Program-made: the position numbers and the translations under genes
Notes under the pieces: model-generated
Seen by the model: the letters and a program-made list of their open reading frames with translations, nothing else
The model's database searches: none
Told to the model about the DNA's origin: nothing
Assembly: GCA_028023455.1 (NCBI GenBank)
Contig: JAQFVV010000005.1
Coordinates: forward strand, 19,654,001-19,718,000
From: Epiperipatus broadwayi
Taxonomy: Eukaryota > Animalia > Onychophora
Length of the DNA stretch: 64,000 nucleotides
Reading direction: 5' to 3'
Part shown: positions 4,999 to 62,035 of the stretch, one piece after another
Position numbering within the stretch: the stretch's first letter is position 1
Layout: the number at the start of each line of letters is the position of its first letter

Positions 4999-5879
4999 GA
5001 TGGTTTTAAGATTTTAATAATGGAAATACTATGATTCATCACATCAGATTCGCTAACAATAAGACAGTATTTGCAGAAAATAAAGTTAACATTTACATAG
5101 AATTAACACAAACCAAAGCAGCGGAAGTAGATGATAGATAAAAGCTAAGAATAATCATGTTGTTGCTTTAAATATTCAATAAATTTGATTAATTGGTGAT
5201 GTTTATCATTTTGTATTTTTACTGAAATTTTTTTATAATTGGATGCAATAAAAATTTGTGATGAAAGAAGTATTTTTAGAAATAATATTTAATTTTTTGA
5301 CCAAAACAGAATTTTGCACTTGCATAGTGTTGTGAATGAATTACATTTCCATGTACTGATGTTTCTCTCTCAAAGTCACAATTTATATAATAAAAAAAAT
5401 GATTAAAATTATTATTTTTTTTTACATAACATAAACAGCAAATACCTTTTCAAAAATTGCAAAAATGCCTTGTACACAATGACTTTCTTTAAAATATCTG
5501 AAGCCATCTTTTAGAGCATTATTAAATCAAGAGCAGTTTTCTTCATTCTATTCTAGAACCTTCTATTATGTACTTAAATAATTACTGGACATTTTTGATG
5601 GTGCTGAAGTATAACCATCATTAGATCAGTTCTGGCCTTTGGATTTTTATGTTAAGGCTAGAATTCAAACTGGAGCAACACACTTATGTATTTATTGTCT
5701 TACTTTTTACTTCTTTATATTATTCAGGCTAATCAGGTGAAATTAAAAAATACGTACAGTTGGTCCTATGATTCTATGCATATGGGTGCCAATTACTCAA
5801 GCTTATAGTAAATGATTCTATTATAGAGTGAAGATAATTGCTTTTGGAAATATTGTTGTTAATTTATGGATTATACCAG

Positions 5880-5995
5880 ATGCATTGGTAAGGTAGTACA
5901 TTCTTGAACTCAAAACCTATGAATCAGGGCTCCTGCCCTGCTATTTTTGGTCCTTAAACTTTTAATGAATTCCCGAGCAATAAACCATTCACTTA
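5880..5995 (+). mobile_element. Partial copy of the tRNA-related SINE seen at 13855-14080
   Basis: Shares the 3' part aaacttttaatgaattcccgagcaataaaccat. Confidence 0.4.
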
Positions 5996-6107
5996 ACAAT
6001 AGTTTTATTAATGGTAAGAGATTATTTTATAGTCCATTAAAATTATATTTAAGATAAAAGCTTTTTAATGTTTTGTTAGGAGTGCAGTTTTACATAAGTT
6101 GGAAGAA

Positions 6108-7040
6108 ATATTTACTGAGGCTATAACCTCGATAATATGCGTATAAAATGCGATAGTAGGGACCTCTACAGGTGTTTTAACCACAAGCTTATGCTATGGA
6201 AGAAAAGAGGAGAACCCTTCTTTACTTCAACCTACTTTGTATTTAAATAGGTGAAGCTGAAGCGGTTAGATCTGCGAGCGTGAAGCTATTCAATACTTCA
6301 CTGATTAAGTCCACATTTCTTATTACACATTAATACTCGTGAAATCTTTCGATTTACAACGAGTCAATGGAAAGATTTTATATTTAGAAATCTATTACAG
6401 TAATTTAAAGTTGTAATTATAAATTTATTAAACGCACATTGATTACGTAAGTAATATTTACTGAGGCTATAACCTCGATAATATGCGTATAAAATGCGAT
6501 AGTAGGGACTTCTACAGGTGTTTTAACCACAAGCTTACGCTATGGAAGAAAAGAGGGGAACCCTTCTTTACTTCAACCTACTTTGTATTTAAATAGGTGA
6601 AGCTGAAGCGGTTAGATCTGCGAGCGTGAAGCTATTTAATACTTCACTTACGTAATCAATGTGCGTTTAATAAATTTATAATTACAACTTTAAATTACTG
6701 TAATAGATTTCTAAATATAAAATCTTTCCATTGACTCGTTGTAAATCGAAAGATTTCGCGAGTATTAATGTGTAATAAGAAATGTGGACTTAATCAGTGA
6801 AGTATTGAATAGCTTCACGCTCGCAGATCTAACCGCTTCAGCTTCACCTATTTAAATACAAAGTAGGTTGAAGTAAAGAAGGGTTCCCCTTGGGTTCCCC
6901 TCTTTTCTTCCATAGCGTAAGCTTGTGGTTAAAACACCTGTAGAGGTCCCTACTATTGCATTTTATACTCATATTATCGAGGTTATAGCCTCAGTAAATA
7001 TTACTTACGTAATCAATGTGCATTTAATAAATTTATAATT
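6108..7040. mobile_element. Family 2 fold-back insertion: about 1.55 tandem 346-bp monomers plus about 1.1 inverted monomers
   Basis: CTGAGG anchors at 6115 and 6461 give a period of 346. The inverted arm starts about 6646 with ACT microhomology. 14-bp TSD ATAAGTTGGAAGAA at 6094-6107 and 7041-7054. The arms are nearly identical. Confidence 0.9.
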
Positions 7041-7183
7041 ATAAGTTGGAAGAATAAATTATAAAACTGCAAATACATCTCATAGTCTCAGCTTACAGTA
7101 CTTTTCAATAGTATGCTATTTATTCTATTTATATTCTCCCACTTATTGTAAGCTTAAATAATCATTAGATTTTAAAAATCCAG

Positions 7184-7336
7184 ATGCATTAGATCCAGGT
7201 TCAAAACATTTTACTGGCAAAGTCTACAAGCCAAAATCTATACTGGGATATGGATATGAGAGCACTGGATAGGGATTTAATTAGCGTTACATCTAGCATC
7301 TATTGTTTATTCAAGCTTACAACAACGGATGGCATA
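7184..7336 (+). mobile_element. Old, diverged family 1-related fragment
   Basis: Colinear degenerate match to gcattagatcc...acaagcca..ctgggatat..gcact.gatagggattt..catc.attg.ttattcaagcttac. Confidence 0.5.
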
Positions 7337-22308: not shown

Positions 22309-24344
22309 TGAAACAGTTATGCTGTTACTCATATAGATATTCAAAAGACCCCCCCCCCCCATTTAAAAACGTCTAGCGTGATTCAATCTAATTGGGAACG
22401 CAATAAAGCTGTAATTTGTTAAAAAAAAAGGAAAAATCATATTTTTAATTTTGTGATTGATGGATTTAAATAAAATGTTAAGTTATCTTATTTTTTTTAT
22501 CTGTCTCAATAAAAAAAAAGAAAAGAAATTAATTATCCAATCATTAAAAAGAAAAAAAGAAAAGATACTTGAGTTAAACTGAGGCAGTATTCAAATTAGA
22601 CACGTCGTGGGAAGAAAAGAACCTTTTTTTTTTTTCTCTCTCGTCTTACACAGAGAGGCAGAATATATTAAATCTTTTTTTTTTAAAAAAAAAGGTGTAT
22701 TACTTAATTCTTTTGACTCATTAAAATGGAAAAAGAAAGTATTCATAGAGGAATTATAATGTCAATGGGCTAATTTATCAGCTTCAATCTCTCCACGCTG
22801 TGCCATGACTTTCCATCGATGAAATAACCCGCATTCTTTTGAATAAAATGGACTGCAAAACTGGAAGGTAATTTTTATAAAATACTAAAACATATTTATC
22901 ATACGTTATAAAGTGGAATTATGAAATAATTACATAGAATTTGTTTTGTAAAATATTAAAACATGTTTATCATACGTAATAAAATGAAGTTATGAAATAG
23001 TTATACGCAAATTTATTTATAAAAATATTTGAACGTATTTACTATATGAATTAGAAATGCTTTAATTGCATATTACTTCTATCTGGGTAATGTAACAGAG
23101 TTTATGTATAAGAATATACTTTTATATTTGGCTAAATTATAAATGCCTCAATTATCAAATGATAAATGCTCTACAAACCAAGAATTGCTGAGTTCAAATG
23201 TCTACCAATCGGTAATAATTCATAAAATGATGAAATGCTGTATAAATCATAAATACTTGACTGCTTCTAAGGTTCTTACCTTAAATGAATTCAAAATGAA
23301 TTATTGTATAAACCATAAGTGCTTGACTGCTTCAAAATGAATTATTGTATAAACCATAAATGCTTGACTGCTTCTAAGGTTCTTACCTTAAATGAATTCA
23401 AAATGAATTATTGTATAAACCATAAGTGCTTGTCTGCTTCAAAATGAATTATTGTATAAACCATAAATGCTTGACTGCTTCTAAGCTTCTTCTCATAAAG
23501 GAATACAAAAACAAACTATTGTTGAATTGGAATATTTCTAAGCTTCTCATAAAGGAATACAAAAATGAACTATTGTTGAAGTAGGATGTTTCCAAGCTTC
23601 TTCTCATAAAGGAATTAATGAACTATTGTTGAATTAGAATATTCACAAGCTTCTTCACATAAATGAATTTAAGATGAATTATTGTATAAATCATAAATGC
23701 TTTACTGCTTCTAAGCTTCTTCTCTTAAATGAATTCAAAATGAACTATTAAATGAATTCGAAATGAACTATTGTTGAATCAGAATAATCCCAAGCTTCTT
23801 CTCATAAAGGAATTAATGAACTATTGTTGAATTAGAATATTCACAAGCTTCTTCCCATAAATGAATTCAAAATGAACTATTATTGAATTAGAATGTTTCC
23901 AAGCTTATTCTCATAGAGGAATTAATGAACTATTGTTGAAATTGCAAATTAATTGTTATTTAATAAATTTTTTTTGTTACTAAAAATTAAATTGGTTGTC
24001 CAGTTATCCAATTCTGTTTTGTTTTAATGCATCACTCATCAGTTATAGCACTGGTTCATGAGAATCTCATGTTCTCTGAGCTACGTCTGACATAACTTGA
24101 CCTAGACCAGTCAGGTTGTAGTGAGATGGAACTCTAATGGCGCTCTTTGGGAAACCAAACATAGAAATATTTAGATGTTTCCAGTCTCTATGTACTACAT
24201 CCTCTGATGAGCAGGAAATATTGTTGTAGGGGGGCATTAACATCCGCATTAAGAATATCAATTGATGGTTCCTTCCTGCAGCATGCTCATCAGAAAATTG
24301 TTACAACTGACGTAATAAAATGGTTGTATGGCGGTCCGGTTACA
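22309..24344 (+). repeat. 5' LTR (2036 bp)
   Basis: Starts TGAAACAG, ends GTTACA, and is duplicated at 26891-28910. Confidence 0.9.
23225..23940 (+). repeat. Minisatellite array inside the LTR (units of about 41 and 64 bp); second copy about 27800-28505
   Basis: Repeated atgaattattgtataaaccataa.tgcttgactgcttc and atgaactattgttgaattagaat..caagcttcttctcataaaggaa units. Confidence 0.85.
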
Positions 24345-26890: not shown

Positions 26891-28910
26891 TGAGACAGAT
26901 ATGCTGTCCCTCATATAAATATTCAAAAGATCCCCCCCCATTCAAAAATGTCTAGCGTGATTCAGTCTAATTGGAAACGCAATAAAGCTGTGATTTGTTA
27001 AAAAAAAAAGGAAAAATCATATTTTTAATTTTGTGATTGATGGATTTAAATAAAATGTTAAGTTATCTTATTTTTTTTTTTATCTGTCTCAATAAAAAAA
27101 AAGAGAAATTAATTATCCAATCATTAAAAAGAAAGAAAAAAGATACTTGAGTTAAACTGAGGCAGTATTCAAATTAGACACGTCGTGGGAAGAAAAGAAC
27201 CTTTTTTTTTTTCTCTCTCGTCTTACACAGAGAGGCAGAATATATTAAATCTTTTTTTTTTAAAAAAAAAGGTGTATTACTTAATTCTTTTGACTCATTA
27301 AAATGGAAAAAGAAAGTATTCATAGAGGAATTATAATGTCAATGGGCTAATTTATCAGCTTCAATCTCTCCACGCTGTGCCATGACTTTCCATCGATGAA
27401 ATAACCCGCATTCTTTTGAATAAAATGGACTGCAAAACTGGAAGGTAATTTTTATAAAATACTAAAACATATTTATCATACGTTATAAAGTGGAATTATG
27501 AAATAATTACATAGAATTTGTTTTGTAAAATATTAAAACATGTTTATCATACGTAATAAAATGAAGTTATGAAATAGTTATACGCAAATTTATTTATAAA
27601 AATATTTGAACGTATTTACTATATGAATTAGAAATGCTTTAATTGCATATTACTTCTATCTGGGTAATGTAACAGAGTTTATGTATAAGAATATACTTCT
27701 ATATTTGGCTAAATTATAAATGCCTCAATTATCAAATGATAAATGCTCTACAAACCAAGAATTGCTGAGTTCAAATGTCTACCAATCGGTAATAATTCAT
27801 AAAATGATGAAATGCTGTATAAATCATAAATACTTGACTGCTTCTAAGGTTCTTACCTTAAATGAATTCAAAATGAATTATTGTATAAACCATAAGTGCT
27901 TGACTGCTTCAAAATGAATTATTGTATAAACCATAAATGCTTGACTGCTTCTAAGGTTCTTACCTTAAATGAATTCAAAATGAATTATTGTATAAACCAT
28001 AAGTGCTTGACTGCTTCAAAATGAATTATTGTATAAACCATAAATGCTTGACTGCTTCTAAGCTTCTTCTCATAAAGGAATACAAAAACAAACTATTGTT
28101 GAATTGAATTTTCTACTTCTTCTCAGATACAAAAATAACTATTGTTAAGTAATAATTCCAAGCTTCTTCTCATAAAGGAATTAATGAACTATTGTTGAAT
28201 TAGAATATTCACAAGCTTCTTCACATAAATGAATTTAAGATGAATTATTGTATAAATCATAAATGCTTTACTGCTTCTAAGCTTCTTCTCTTAAATGAAT
28301 TCAAAATGAACTATTAAATGAATTCGAAATGAACTATTGTTGAATCAGAATAATCCCAAGCTTCTTCTCATAAAGGAATTAATGAACTATTGTTGAATTA
28401 GAATATTCACAAGCTTCTTCCCATAAATGAATTCAAAATGAACTATTATTGAATTAGAATGTTTCCAAGCTTATTCTCATAGAGGAATTAATGAACTATT
28501 GTTGAAATTGCAAATTAATTGTTATTTAATAAATTTTTTTTGTTACTAAAAATTAAATTGGTTGTCCAGTTATCCAATTCTGTTTTGTTTTAATGCATCA
28601 CTCATCAGTTATAGCACTGGTTCATGAGAATCTCATGTTCTCTGAGCTACGTCTGACATAACTTGACCTAGGCCAGTCAGGTTGTAGTGAGATGGAACTC
28701 TAATGGCGCTCTTTGGGAAACCAAACATAGAAATATTTAGATGTTTCCAGTCTCTATGTACTACATCCTCTGATGAGCAGGAAATATTGTTGTAGGGGGG
28801 CATTAACATCCGCATTAAGAATATCAATTGACGGTTCCTTCCTGCAGCATGCTCATCAGAAAATTGTTACAACTGACGTAATAAAATGGTTGTATGGCGG
28901 TCCGGTTACA
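26891..28910 (+). repeat. 3' LTR (2020 bp)
   Basis: Starts TGAGACAG and ends GTTACA. Confidence 0.9.
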
Positions 28911-32248: not shown

Positions 32249-32826
32249 AACTGAAACACAGGCTTATTATATATCTGTGTCTATATATGTAATATAGGGT
32301 ATATGAGCACAGACTTTCAGATGACCCATCACTGTCCACTCTATATACCCTATATTACATATATAGACACAGGTATATAATAAGCCTGTGTTTCAGTTAT
32401 TACATTGTAGAGATGTCTGCCCATCCTTGCATATGTATTGAATGGATTATGTCCTGTACATGTGGGGTTCAGATTGACCTTAGGTCAACATGGGTGTGAC
32501 AAGAATCTTGGCCTCAGGGTGGCCTTCGAGCATTCCATCATCAGATTTTCAATTGGATGGATGGTTGAAGAGTTGGATTGTGTAGTAGATTGGAGCCTGT
32601 CCATTAAAGTATGAAGATTGTCTATCTTAATATATATCTGAGCACTTATAGTATATATGTGTTGGAAATGATAATCTGGACCAACTGATGATTGCTGGTT
32701 TAGCATGAAATACGTATATTGGTGATTATTTATCTTTTCAGCATATATGTGCTTGAGTGTGTCAGTGTTATAGATAGAGTGGACAGTGATGGGTCATCTG
32801 TAAGTCCGTGCTCATATACCCTATAT
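32249..32826. mobile_element. Family 3 hammerhead fold-back insertion (471-bp monomer)
   Basis: 12-bp TSD TACATTGGGAAT at 32237-32248 and 32827-32838. Short antisense arm 32249-32344. ATACCCTATATTAC recurs at 32345 and 32816. Confidence 0.88.
32680..32723 (+). ncRNA. Minimal type I hammerhead ribozyme (family 3)
   Basis: ACCAA CTGATGA T-TGCT-GGTTT-AGCA-T GAAA TACGTA TA TTGGT. Stem I is ACCAA/TTGGT and stem III is the palindrome ATACGTAT. Predicted cleavage after A32718. Confidence 0.8.
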
Positions 32827-34390: not shown

Positions 34391-34494
34391 TTTTTTCTCA
34401 TGTGTCATAGCATCAGCCGGGAAGCGAACCCGCTAACCCGGGACAACTGCTTGTAAAGCAGCTGTCGCTGACCTCTCACCCACCAATGCTTGAC
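34391..34494 (-). mobile_element. tRNA-derived SINE (family S1), copy 2
   Basis: Shares the 3' end gggttcgc.tcccggc.gatgctatgaca.atg. Anticodon-like arm CTGC-TTTACAA-GCAG. 15-bp TSD TGAAAAACCAATATT at 34376-34390 and 34495-34509. Confidence 0.8.
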
Positions 34495-43270: not shown

Positions 43271-43557
43271 CATCACATGACCGCCACTTCTTATGCTTGT
43301 GTATAGCTGTTGTGTAAACAGGCAAAACTCACTATACATATTGCCACACACAGCTGCTGGAGGGTTGCATTAGATCCTAAGATCTAGGTGTAGTGTTCTC
43401 AGATCCAAGGCTCCTCACTGATGAAGGCCACAAGCCGGAAACTAGTCTGGGGATATTGGATGAGTAGGCACTAGATGGGGATTTTATGCACAAGCCTTCT
43501 GGCATCCATTGATTACTCTAGCTTGCTGTGTGTGGCAATATGTATAGTGAGGTTTAC
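43271..43557. mobile_element. Family 1 hammerhead fold-back insertion, copy D
   Basis: 16-bp TSD CTATTATACAAATAAA at 43255-43270 and 43558-43573. Short antisense arm followed by a sense arm. Confidence 0.9.
43412..43453 (+). ncRNA. Minimal type I hammerhead ribozyme (family 1, best-preserved copy)
   Basis: TCCTCA CTGATGA A-GGC-CACAA-GCC-G GAAA CTAG TC TGGGGA. Stem I has 6 bp with one G-U pair and stem III is the palindrome ACTAGT. GUC cleavage predicted after C43447. Confidence 0.82.
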
Positions 43558-45339: not shown

Positions 45340-45378
45340 GCTCTGATGAAGACTGCAGGACAGTCGAAACTATCAGGA
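45340..45378 (+). ncRNA. Orphan, probably decayed, Penelope-type hammerhead motif
   Basis: CTGATGA (45343-45349) A GACTG CAGGA CAGTC GAAAC TATC. Stem II is a perfect 5 bp, but stems I and III are weak. Confidence 0.5.
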
Positions 45379-46818
45379 AAATAAAGAAAGCATTAAAAAA
45401 AGTTTTTTGCATTAAAGTATATGAAGGGGTTATTGTATGCAATATATATGAAAAATAATAATAAAAAAATTCTATCTTTAAAAAAAAATTACACATTTAA
45501 CAAATTTCCCTTGGATAATTAACAAAATAACAAAAAAGTATAACATCTGAACCATTAAAATTAATATTTGTTACATATTTATAAAAAATCAATACAGCCA
45601 TATATGAAAACAAAATTAACTATACTTCTATGAAGATTCAATTCAGTTAAAAAAGGTAAACATTTTTTTTTTTGGGGGGGGGGGCATTCTAAGAATATAG
45701 AGTCACAATTAAAACTAAAAAACTTGTCCTATATCCGGGAAAGTTTTTCATCAACAAAGAGCAGGTATATGGAAATAATAATTAGCACTACCACCTAGTA
45801 TCTATTGATTACTGAAGCTTACAATAGCAATGTTGAAAAAACAGAATTCGCTACCTGTTAGCCTTAAATTCTTGTGACTTTCACTCTTAACTTTTGAAAC
45901 TTATTTTTAAAAAATCAAATTATTTGATTGGAATCTCTTAAAACACATGGAAATTTTTTTTAAAAATTAAATATAAAGTTTTAATGACAAAGAATATTTT
46001 TTATTTTAATGTTTATACTTTAAAGGAATTTAAAAGCAGTTTTTTTTTAATAATTTAAATCCCAATAAAAATAGCAAAAATTTTTTAATGGTTTTACTTG
46101 AAGTGATTTAACAAAAGAACTCATTTTGGAAATATTTGTGCATTTCGGAAATATTTTACATTATGTATATATCTTAAGATCTCTGTCCAAAAACAAAGTA
46201 GAGTTACTAGGCAATAGATTTGTACAACCAAACAATAACATTTGATTATCATCAGTACTAATTTGCTTACCACTCTTTTAACATAATGTATTCCATCATC
46301 TCAACTTTAGACCAAATCATAAAGCTTAATGAATTTCTACAGCTACAATGTATAATTTATATTTAATTTGTATTATTAAAGAACTTCTAAAAGAGTATGG
46401 AGTTACGGTAGAAATAAATCATAAACACCAACTGGATATCTAGAAAAATATAGCAAAGATCTCAATAATAACTTGAAAAATAAAATAGCAGTTGACAAAT
46501 ATTCAGTGTCTTGATGAATTAGTTCCTAAATGCATGATCTCTGTCCTTCAAAGAAAGAGACTAGCTATTACTAGTTGATGGATTTTGACAGTTTTCTTTC
46601 TTTGCTTTACTCTAGCTAATAATTTTTATAGTCCTATCTTCTGATCAATATTGGATGATTATCTCAAATGAATAAGAATGAGCTACCTGGAAAAAAAATC
46701 CCGTCTGATTAGAATTGCAAAATGTTATGTTTTACTTAGCCTATATTCAAATCTCAAGTTATAGGATAGCAATTGGATATGCTATCTCTACAACAGAGTC
46801 TTCATATATATTGATTAT

Positions 46819-48000: not shown

Positions 48001-49384
48001 TTCCTAAGCAACGAGCTGCTGATGGGTTTTTATGTCAACACGATAATTTTGGCAGCTGCTGCCAGACCCAGTTCTAACAATAATGGTAATAATAAATCGG
48101 ATGATGGGAAAAGAAAGAAATCCATCGCTTGGGGGAGAAGAGGAGCCGCCCCGCCGCGCAAGGGGAGGGGGGGGGGGGGGGGGGGGGGGGGTTCCGGGCC
48201 GGGGGAGGGGATGAAAAAAAAAAAAAAAATAAAATTCGATAATGGAAAGGATAATTAATTTAGTGTTGAAGAGAAAATGCAAACACTAGATTTTACTATT
48301 TGTTTTTACTGTTTAATATCTCTAAATAAATAATTTCTCGATAAATACTTAAATTTATCACAAAAGAAAAATACTACTTTAATGACATGACTACTTAATT
48401 TTAGACGACTTAAAAGTGAGGAATTAAAAACTCATAAATAATAAATGAAATTAAAGTAAATCTTAAATTTAATAAGTGATAATTCCGTGTTTTCTATAGA
48501 AACTTAAATTGCTATTAATATACTACTTCCACATATGTACTTTTTTATTTCGCGCAGGTGGAAGACAATTAAGACTATTACTTTGTAATGCCACTCTTAA
48601 ATTAATGTTTATGATATATTCACAAATGAAAATGCTAAAATAAATTATATTTAAGAGGGACAAGACACTAATTAAATATTTTCTGTAGCTCAGTCACTTA
48701 TACACATCATAAATCATTGCAGAGTAATACTTTCCCACAAGACCTGTTGCAAGCTTTGTTATGATGTGGAAAATCCTTTGATCTTACCGATCATGCAGTT
48801 CTCAGATTTGAACTTTTCTATGAATATTTTTTACCTCAAGAATTATGTATTTTAAATTCTTCAATTTTTATAATAACAATATTATTTTGGTTTTGATTCC
48901 AACTAGATTTGTATAGTTATTCCTAATATATATTCTTCCACCATATTTTTTTTTTGTTATGGCAGTCTTGGTTTTGCATTACAATTCAAATTTTATATTT
49001 CACACTCATTTGATTAAAAGCTTACTATTACACATAAATGGGCAGGCTTTTTTGTACCGAAACTACCGACTTTGTTGCTTTGAAGCTGACAGAAAGAACA
49101 ACATAGAGCTATACACTAAAGATTTATTAAGTATTGGTTTCAATTTTTTTTTTTAATAAAATATAGGAAATTTTATTCTGTAATTTGTTTACAACTCATA
49201 TGATAAGGTTAAAAATGGGATACATTAAATGATATTCAAAGAAGAAAAAAGTTTGATGATGTTTATTATCTTGTTACAAATCTTTGAGTTTACATGATTA
49301 TAATGTGTGCTATACAAAGTTTAACTCTTCATTTTACTCAGTAAATGTTAATTCACATACTATAACTAAGAAATTGAAACCTCA

Positions 49385-51337: not shown

Positions 51338-51930
51338 TAAGCCAATAAACATCACATGACCACCACTTCTTATGCTTGTGTATAACTGTTTTAATAACAG
51401 GCAAAACTCACTATATGTATTGCCACATACAGCAAGTTAGAGTAATCAGTGAATCCCAGAAGACTTGTGCATAAAATCCCCATCTAGTGCCTACTCATCC
51501 AATATCCCCAGACTAGTTTCTGGCTTGTGGTCTTCATCAGTGAGGAGCCTTGGATCTGAGAGCACTGCACCTAGATCTTAGGATTTAATGCAACTCTCCA
51601 GCAGCCACCTTTTATCTCCACTTAACTACAAAACTATGAGTCTTAAACTGAAAACACAATGTTTTCAATCCAAGCCCATTAGCCTATATAGTCATATGGG
51701 TCTGAACTCAGTTCAGTACCCATACATTTTGGTGTCTTTGGTTCTTTAATAACCATAGCCACCACTATCCTATTAGGCTCCTCACTGACAAAGACCACAA
51801 GCCAGAAACTAGTCTGAGGATATTGGATGAGTAGGCGCTAGATAGGAATTTTATGCACAAGCCTTCTGGCATCCATTGATTACTCTAGCTTGCTGTGTGC
51901 AGCAATACATATAGTGAGTTTTGCCTGTTT
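51338..51930. mobile_element. Family 1 hammerhead fold-back insertion, copy F
   Basis: 13-bp TSD TAATCATTGTTTT at 51325-51337 and 51931-51943. Antisense arm of about 440 bp and an AGGC junction microhomology. Hammerheads at 51505-51546 (-, core intact) and about 51779-51820 (+, CTGACAA). Confidence 0.9.
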
Positions 51931-61884: not shown

Positions 61885-62035
61885 GAACTCAGACTTTCAC
61901 ATGACCCACCACTCTCAGTGCCATCTCATATTGCTGACCCACCTGATCACACACATGTTGAGAAGATAAATAATCACCAATATACATATTTCATGCTAAA
62001 CCAGCAATCATCAGTTGGTCTAGATTACTATCCTC
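61885..62035 (-). mobile_element. Second family 3 copy with hammerhead at 61976-62019
   Basis: The minus strand reads ACCAA CTGATGA TTGCTGGTTTAGCAT GAAA TATGTA TA TTGGT. Confidence 0.8.

Follow-up and report, generated by a model that had tools for sequence, protein, structure and literature searches.

Background

Insertions of Penelope-like elements (PLEs) are marked by partial tandems, an adjacent inverted and 5'-truncated copy, target-site duplications of variable length and strong 5' truncation (Craig et al. 2021, PMC8557442). They also carry a tail of 30-40 bp, often at one end only (PMC8557442). In experiments with a purified PLE protein, both DNA strands were nicked and extended (Frangieh et al. 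2024, PMC11167929), and reverse transcription began at two neighbouring positions inside the RNA, which correspond to the tail (PMC11167929). The protein, from an Anolis PLE, inserts equally well in vitro when the hammerhead is mutated (PMC11167929). Moreover, two PLE clades, Naiad (known from invertebrates) and Chlamys, have no canonical hammerheads, yet they reach very high copy numbers, and non-autonomous Chlamys elements exist, such as MRC1 in Chlamydomonas (PMC8557442).

A second described system is the metazoan non-LTR retrozymes, which are short (150-450 bp), AT-rich, non-coding tandem units, dispersed through the genome and flanked by duplications of more than 4 bp (Cervera and de la Pena 2020, PMC7229834; Li et al. 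2026 preprint, 10.64898/2026.07.22.740005). They co-occur with PLEs and have been proposed to depend on them (PMC7229834; 10.64898/2026.07.22.740005). Two features define a retrozyme: each unit contains a type I hammerhead, and it is expressed as circular RNA of monomer length.

Here we describe an insertion in the onychophoran Epiperipatus broadwayi which is a young member of a very abundant 346-bp non-coding retroelement family. The family shares with retrozymes the short AT-rich tandem units, the dispersal, the duplications and the company of PLEs. None of 75 monomers has a hammerhead core on either strand; for want of a hammerhead it is not a retrozyme, although it is like a retrozyme in every genomic respect. 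With PLE insertions it shares pseudo-LTR tandems, an inverted 5'-truncated copy, a one-sided 30-40-bp tail, variable duplications and AT-rich targets, and every one of its features fits the published PLE picture (PMC8557442, PMC11167929). Like the hammerhead-less PLE clades and their passengers, it combines PLE geometry and high copy number with multicopy head-to-tail non-autonomous insertions (PMC8557442). Unlike an autonomous PLE, it has no RT/GIY-YIG ORF and no sequence link to the PLEs sampled in the genome. We conclude that the insertion is probably the product of one retrotransposition event, in which a non-autonomous, ribozyme-less element of 346-nt tandem units was copied in trans by a PLE RT/GIY-YIG endonuclease.

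Architecture of the insertion

The window, by which we mean the whole stretch of 64,000 nucleotides analysed (contig JAQFVV010000005.1, positions 19,654,001 to 19,718,000), has a GC content of 29.6% and a CpG observed/expected ratio of 0.30. It belongs to an AT-rich, CpG-depleted assembly of 5.6 Gb in 18,588 contigs. A single insertion occupies window positions 6108-7040 and is bounded by perfect 14-bp target-site duplications. Both the repeat finder and sequence reading gave a monomer length of 346 bp: a direct repeat links 6103-6302 with 6449-6648 at a spacing of 346 and 98% identity, and the inverted-repeat arms were found as matches of 245 nt (99%), 156 nt and 115 nt (both 96%). The arms stand head to head, the left one comprising 1.58 monomers and the right one a monomer plus a 34-nt tail, as follows.

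6094-6107, no strand: target-site duplication, left copy, 14 bp (ATAAGTTGGAAGAA), an exact repeat of 7041-7054
6108-6448, minus strand (sense = minus): left arm, monomer pass 1, the 100% reference copy, by monomer mapping, with polarity calibrated on family 1
6449-6648, minus strand: left arm, pass 2, 200 nt, 5'-truncated at consensus position 200, by the 98% direct repeat
6646-6649, no strand: head-to-head centre junction, 3-4 nt (ACT/T) common to both arms, by sequence reading; the arm limits overlap here
6650-7006, plus strand (sense = plus): right arm, full monomer, 357 nt, 95% match to positions 1-346, inverted
7007-7040, plus strand: tail, 34 nt of the next monomer, on the right arm only, ending at the long start site, A
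7041-7054, no strand: target-site duplication, right copy, 14 bp (ATAAGTTGGAAGAA)

The preliminary description of this DNA had counted three near-identical monomer passes. The 346-bp unit holds up; the count is really one monomer, 0.58 of a monomer, one more monomer and the tail. The perfect 14-bp duplication that it reported is exact on both sides. Its arm offset of about 38 nt was also recovered: the outer end of the left arm is the short start site, B, at consensus position 6, so that one outer end lies about 5 nt short of the monomer boundary and the other 34 nt past it, an offset of about 38-39 nt.

The right-arm monomer measures 357 nt because it contains an 11-nt duplication at 6881-6891, which both left-arm passes lack. 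As evidence on whether one template monomer served for both arms, this difference is ambiguous. Separately, an 11-nt insertion or duplication at the same GGGTTCCCC site is found, in the same alignment columns, in the unrelated copies L074, L076 and L081; the recurrence could be due to variation in a source copy or to a site prone to slippage. The sequences on either side of the insertion (5560-5820 and 7140-7330) have weak direct and inverted repeats in common, for example 7143-7170 with 7298-7325 at 86%, so the element may have landed within an older repeat.

Polarity was assigned by reference to family 1, at 43272-43556 of the same window. This insertion has a 16-bp duplication and a plain CUGAUGA...GAAAC hammerhead, the 3' end of the ribozyme strand coincides with the outer boundary, and the other arm has about 45 nt of extra tail. 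By analogy, the sense strand of the 346-bp family would be the plus strand of the right arm.

Fixed outer ends and variable inner ends

To place this insertion among its relatives, we compared its geometry with that of 48 other fetched places, 27 of them independent young copies and 21 older, including two with a single monomer only. Throughout this sample the arms run from a fixed outer end to a variable inner end. The outer ends cluster at consensus positions 1-9 (site B) or about 299-316 (site A), apart from three arms that end earlier, at 271-282, and site A lies about 38 nt beyond site B along the sense RNA. In all 23 two-armed insertions one arm uses site A and the other site B, and the tail is one-sided in 23 of 23; under independent and equal choice the chance of such pairing is about 1e-7. 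So strict a pairing suggests that one event draws on both start sites. Where there is only one arm, its outer end may lie at either site, and the inner ends of these single-arm insertions are scattered (18, 37, 50, 55, 89, 156, 167 and 274). The arms overlap at the centre by 0-12 nt. Duplications of 11-17 bp surround 19 insertions, three of which have duplications lying within simple repeats, a weak (TA)n target bias. The layout of the insertion is more than chance: it is repeated in the 48 other places, with duplications at 19 of the insertions.

Genome-wide probe counts fall with distance from the outer end, from 16,610 through 10,850 to 6,643, which suggests heavy 5' truncation; the first two probes match the young subfamily only, and the third lies in a more variable window, which may lower its count. 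Among the first 100 matches listed for one probe, 14 close pairs are in one orientation and none in the opposite one. Inner ends seem to concentrate at positions 18-58, which looked like the 5' end of the RNA; this reading was rejected, as general 5' truncation can explain the pattern and there is no single site.

An identical head-to-head centre junction occurs at at least a dozen separate places, for instance at G000:C38:8757819-8757851, where AAGAAAAGAGG is joined to TTATAGCC via GAGG. The recurrence of this GAGG-stem junction suggests that the two cDNAs anneal via the element's own short inverted repeats.

These data can be arranged in a PLE-type pathway, in which the enzyme's identity, the linear multimeric nature of the template and the true lack of catalytic RNA are inferred, as is the use of both start sites in one event. 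The template would be a multimeric sense transcript, with the same sense as the plus strand of the right arm. The target would be nicked on both strands 11-17 bp apart, the stagger here being 14 bp, and each 3'-OH would prime cDNA at one of the two internal RNA start sites. Site B would lie directly after a GAGG/CCTC hairpin and site A about 38 nt further on, one strand priming from each. Both cDNAs would then extend toward the 5' end of the RNA with variable stops, and would be joined head to head via a few nucleotides of microhomology. Repair would leave the target-site duplication, with the tail on one arm only. As to the form of the template, a comparison of rolling-circle with linear copying was uninformative: divergence is alike within and between insertions (2.1% vs 1.7%).

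Abundance and age of the family

A search of the genome with the monomer gave 1,435 first-look candidates, the best of them 95-100% identical. A 29-nt probe across the monomer junction, allowing up to three mismatches, accounts for the 16,610 genome-wide matches given above, and its reversed control has none. The 48 full young monomers differ from their own consensus by a mean of 0.9% at non-CpG sites, and the columns that vary among them are mostly CpG sites.

A further probe, at positions 181-209, has 13,519 matches and led to older copies; it also catches the older subfamilies, and the coverage profile by probe counts is confounded to that extent. The older subfamilies are 83-93% identical to the young consensus, and about 30 positions differ among the young, mid and old consensuses. 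The family has stayed active through at least three subfamilies. Its arrays span from less than one to more than eight units, with one array of more than eight monomers at locus L012.

The 346-bp unit has a GC content of 33% and no coding capacity: its longest open stretch is 52 codons and has no ATG. No RT/GIY-YIG ORF was found in the element, nor any tblastn match to PLE ORFs; lacking such an ORF, the element is non-autonomous.

RNA structure and the search for a ribozyme

The sense monomer folds into a more stable structure than its shuffles (z = -4.7; 0 of 100 shuffles as stable), and the antisense monomer shows a weaker effect (z = -2.3). Two hairpins stand out in the sense RNA.

6734-6763, plus strand: hairpin with an ACTCG/CGAGT outer stem, an AAATC/GATTT inner stem and a GAAA loop
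6979-6992, plus strand: hairpin GAGG-TTATAG-CCTC, about 10 nt upstream of start site B

The first is the GNRA-capped hairpin of the preliminary description; the hairpin is real, and its coordinates are those given here rather than 6737-6765. One pair of its ACTCG/CGAGT outer stem changes from G:C to A:U in the old subfamily; both changes fall at CpG sites and could be due to chance. The second hairpin is retained in the mid and old subfamilies via a G:U pair or a shifted register, and its stem sequence reappears at the centre junctions. When 29 copies were analysed with RNAalifold, the covariation term amounted to only -1.05 kcal/mol. This is no meaningful covariation, and the analysis is uninformative here. 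Decay of the copies is neutral, and the subfamilies differ at few sites, most of them CpG.

The hammerhead core CTGANGA(4-60)GAAA is absent from both strands of 75 monomers and of the young, mid and old consensuses, and CTGANGA and GAAAC are each absent from the same set. When one mismatch was allowed in the core, there were only antisense near-misses, without the helix II/GAAA arrangement. The preliminary observation that neither strand of the insertion has CTGANGA...GAAA is therefore confirmed, and the older copies also lack a hammerhead, which speaks against a loss by this copy only. Scans for the other self-cleaving classes (twister, pistol, hatchet, hairpin and HDV-like) gave no match, the Rfam part of them being a weak test. 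Our own descriptor for an HDV-like fold found 0 matches against 0.1 expected. Rfam searches returned no ribozyme at 5900-7250 (E up to 10), at 19 other loci (E up to 0.1) or in the window (gathering and E-value thresholds); these are weak blanks, because the positive control failed, the plain CUGAUGA...GAAAC hammerhead of family 1 being missed by scans of the same type and all 14 hammerhead core patterns of the window by the window scans.

Those 14 patterns (CTGANGA...GAAA, against 4.2 expected in the 64-kb window) include several in other fold-back families. Among them are the patterns at 43418-43447, 32685-32710, 61989-62014, 45343-45380, 51517-51540, 24204-24218 and 28770-28784, for which Rfam gave no match at any threshold used. 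A 10-nt match, CATTGATTAC, between the 346-bp family and a block conserved in the hammerhead families was set aside as probable chance, since neither strand nor position agrees between the two.

It is against this background that the possibility of a self-cleaving monomer has to be weighed. In this scheme the monomer would be a ribozyme of an undescribed class, or one too divergent to be recognised, which cuts multimers to unit-length and possibly circular RNA in the manner of a retrozyme. The excess structure of the sense strand would fit such a role, as would the persistence of the two hairpins in the subfamilies, one of them with a G:C to A:U double change; hammerheads do occur in sibling families of the same genome, such as family 1, and Rfam is insensitive to small ribozymes here. 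Set against these points, no core motif of any known class was found, covariation is slight, and decay at two CpG sites accounts for its lone compensatory pair. In addition, the inner ends of single-arm insertions are scattered rather than stacked on one nucleotide, and PLE insertion in vitro needs no ribozyme (PMC11167929). We therefore regard a self-cleaving monomer as unlikely. The particular version in which a hairpin-rich, conserved sense RNA carries a self-cleaving or self-circularising motif of an undescribed class, replacing the hammerhead in a retrozyme-like cycle, appears very unlikely.

Of the two suggestions first made for this element, a different, undescribed self-processing RNA has no positive support: Rfam gave no match (a weak test), the HDV-like descriptor gave none, the inner ends of the cDNAs form no discrete pile-up, and covariation is not meaningful. 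The other suggestion, mobilisation without a ribozyme by the same route as the hammerhead families, is favoured by the PLE geometry, by the absence of a hammerhead core in all 75 monomers, which come from three subfamilies, and by published work (PMC11167929, PMC8557442).

PLE enzymes and the search for a partner

Copying in trans by a PLE enzyme presupposes a supply of such enzymes, and intact PLE genes are abundant in this genome. A search for GIY-YIG gave 10,242 first-look candidates, and all 150 that were scored pass the Pfam cut-off. The open frames reach 901 aa and encode an RT followed by a C-terminal GIY-YIG endonuclease, an order established from translation and genome-wide GIY-YIG matches; all 30 of the GIY-YIG matches inspected are C-terminal. 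The PLE arrays are tandem-plus-inverted, with copies 97-98% identical.

One autonomous PLE array, L064:2259-10000, consists of an inverted 5'-truncated copy and tandem copies, with very K/N/I-rich open frames of 901 and 855+ aa in which a Pfam search found no match. In its pseudo-LTR, GAAAC follows a helix-II-like hairpin, and the place of CTGATGA ahead of the hairpin is taken by CTTGAAAAA.

The monomer was compared with 36 PLE loci from five related C-terminal-endonuclease families, using blastn, nhmmer and tblastn, and there was no similarity at the level of DNA, profile or protein. These loci are a small part of the 10,242 GIY-YIG candidates, and all are of the C-terminal-endonuclease type, as distinct from the N-terminal-endonuclease (Naiad) PLEs. 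The sole match was a 75-bp fragment of the 346-bp family itself near one PLE locus. Three IUPAC probes, which required the 3' motifs and forbade the family's own upstream sequence, retrieved only centre junctions and small indel variants. The monomer had been considered as a possible fragment of a known PLE pseudo-LTR; it matches none of those sampled. In this respect the family differs from the Chlamys non-autonomous elements, whose 3' end is common with a known partner (PMC8557442), as it has no such partner among the 36 loci.

The lack of a partner among the PLE loci sampled could be taken to favour a SINE-like passenger of a LINE or of some other non-PLE RT, with the head-to-head arms made by L1-style twin priming, since twin priming also yields inverted, 5'-truncated arms and duplications of about 7-20 bp. 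Nevertheless, neither outer end has a poly(A) or simple-repeat 3' tail. There are two fixed internal start sites about 38 nt apart, with one of each in every two-armed insertion, and such a tail signature has been described for PLEs only (PMC8557442, PMC11167929). The geometry is, moreover, common to hammerhead-bearing families such as family 1. A LINE-type origin is thus distinctly unlikely. Finally, a DNA-level product (a fold-back DNA transposon, a satellite block or a replication-generated palindrome) would account for the long, near-perfect inverted arms, the tandem units and the array of more than eight monomers at L012, but it is scarcely credible given outer ends that are fixed and inner ends that vary, the hallmark of cDNAs primed at the 3' end and truncated at the 5' end, duplications whose length varies between 11 and 17 bp, asymmetric arms and copies that are thousands of dispersed short fragments.

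Implications of a hammerhead-less family

With PLE-type copying in trans as the preferred reading, the 346-bp family becomes a natural test of whether PLE-type trans mobilisation needs a ribozyme. Its abundance, with 16,610 probe matches, suggests that a ribozyme is unnecessary for this mode of spread, in agreement with the published data (PMC11167929, PMC8557442). A search that relies on the hammerhead, the feature by which animal retrozymes are detected and defined, would pass over this family. The comparison of copies also delimits a small 3' module, consisting of a hairpin and the tail, which may suffice for recognition of the template by the PLE enzyme.

Other features of the window and its surroundings

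The same contig carries a second family, some 9.3 kb upstream of the window (L031:401-1236), built from a 337-bp unit in PLE geometry, with a 14-bp duplication (TAAAGGCAGGATTA) and a one-sided tail of about 46 nt. Its sequence shows no similarity to that of the 346-bp family, and inspection by eye revealed no hammerhead core. Within the window, Tandem Repeats Finder gave rows of matching period and consensus, with near-identical scores, at 22874-23940 and 27451-28506; as these lie 4,577 bp apart, they indicate a recent multi-kb segmental duplication. A tRNA-like match on the minus strand at 34409-34489 scores 28.6 bits, just below the Rfam threshold of 29, and a similar match at L022:2502-2581 scores 35.8 bits, above it. 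The window also contains a G run of about 30 residues at 48162-48191.
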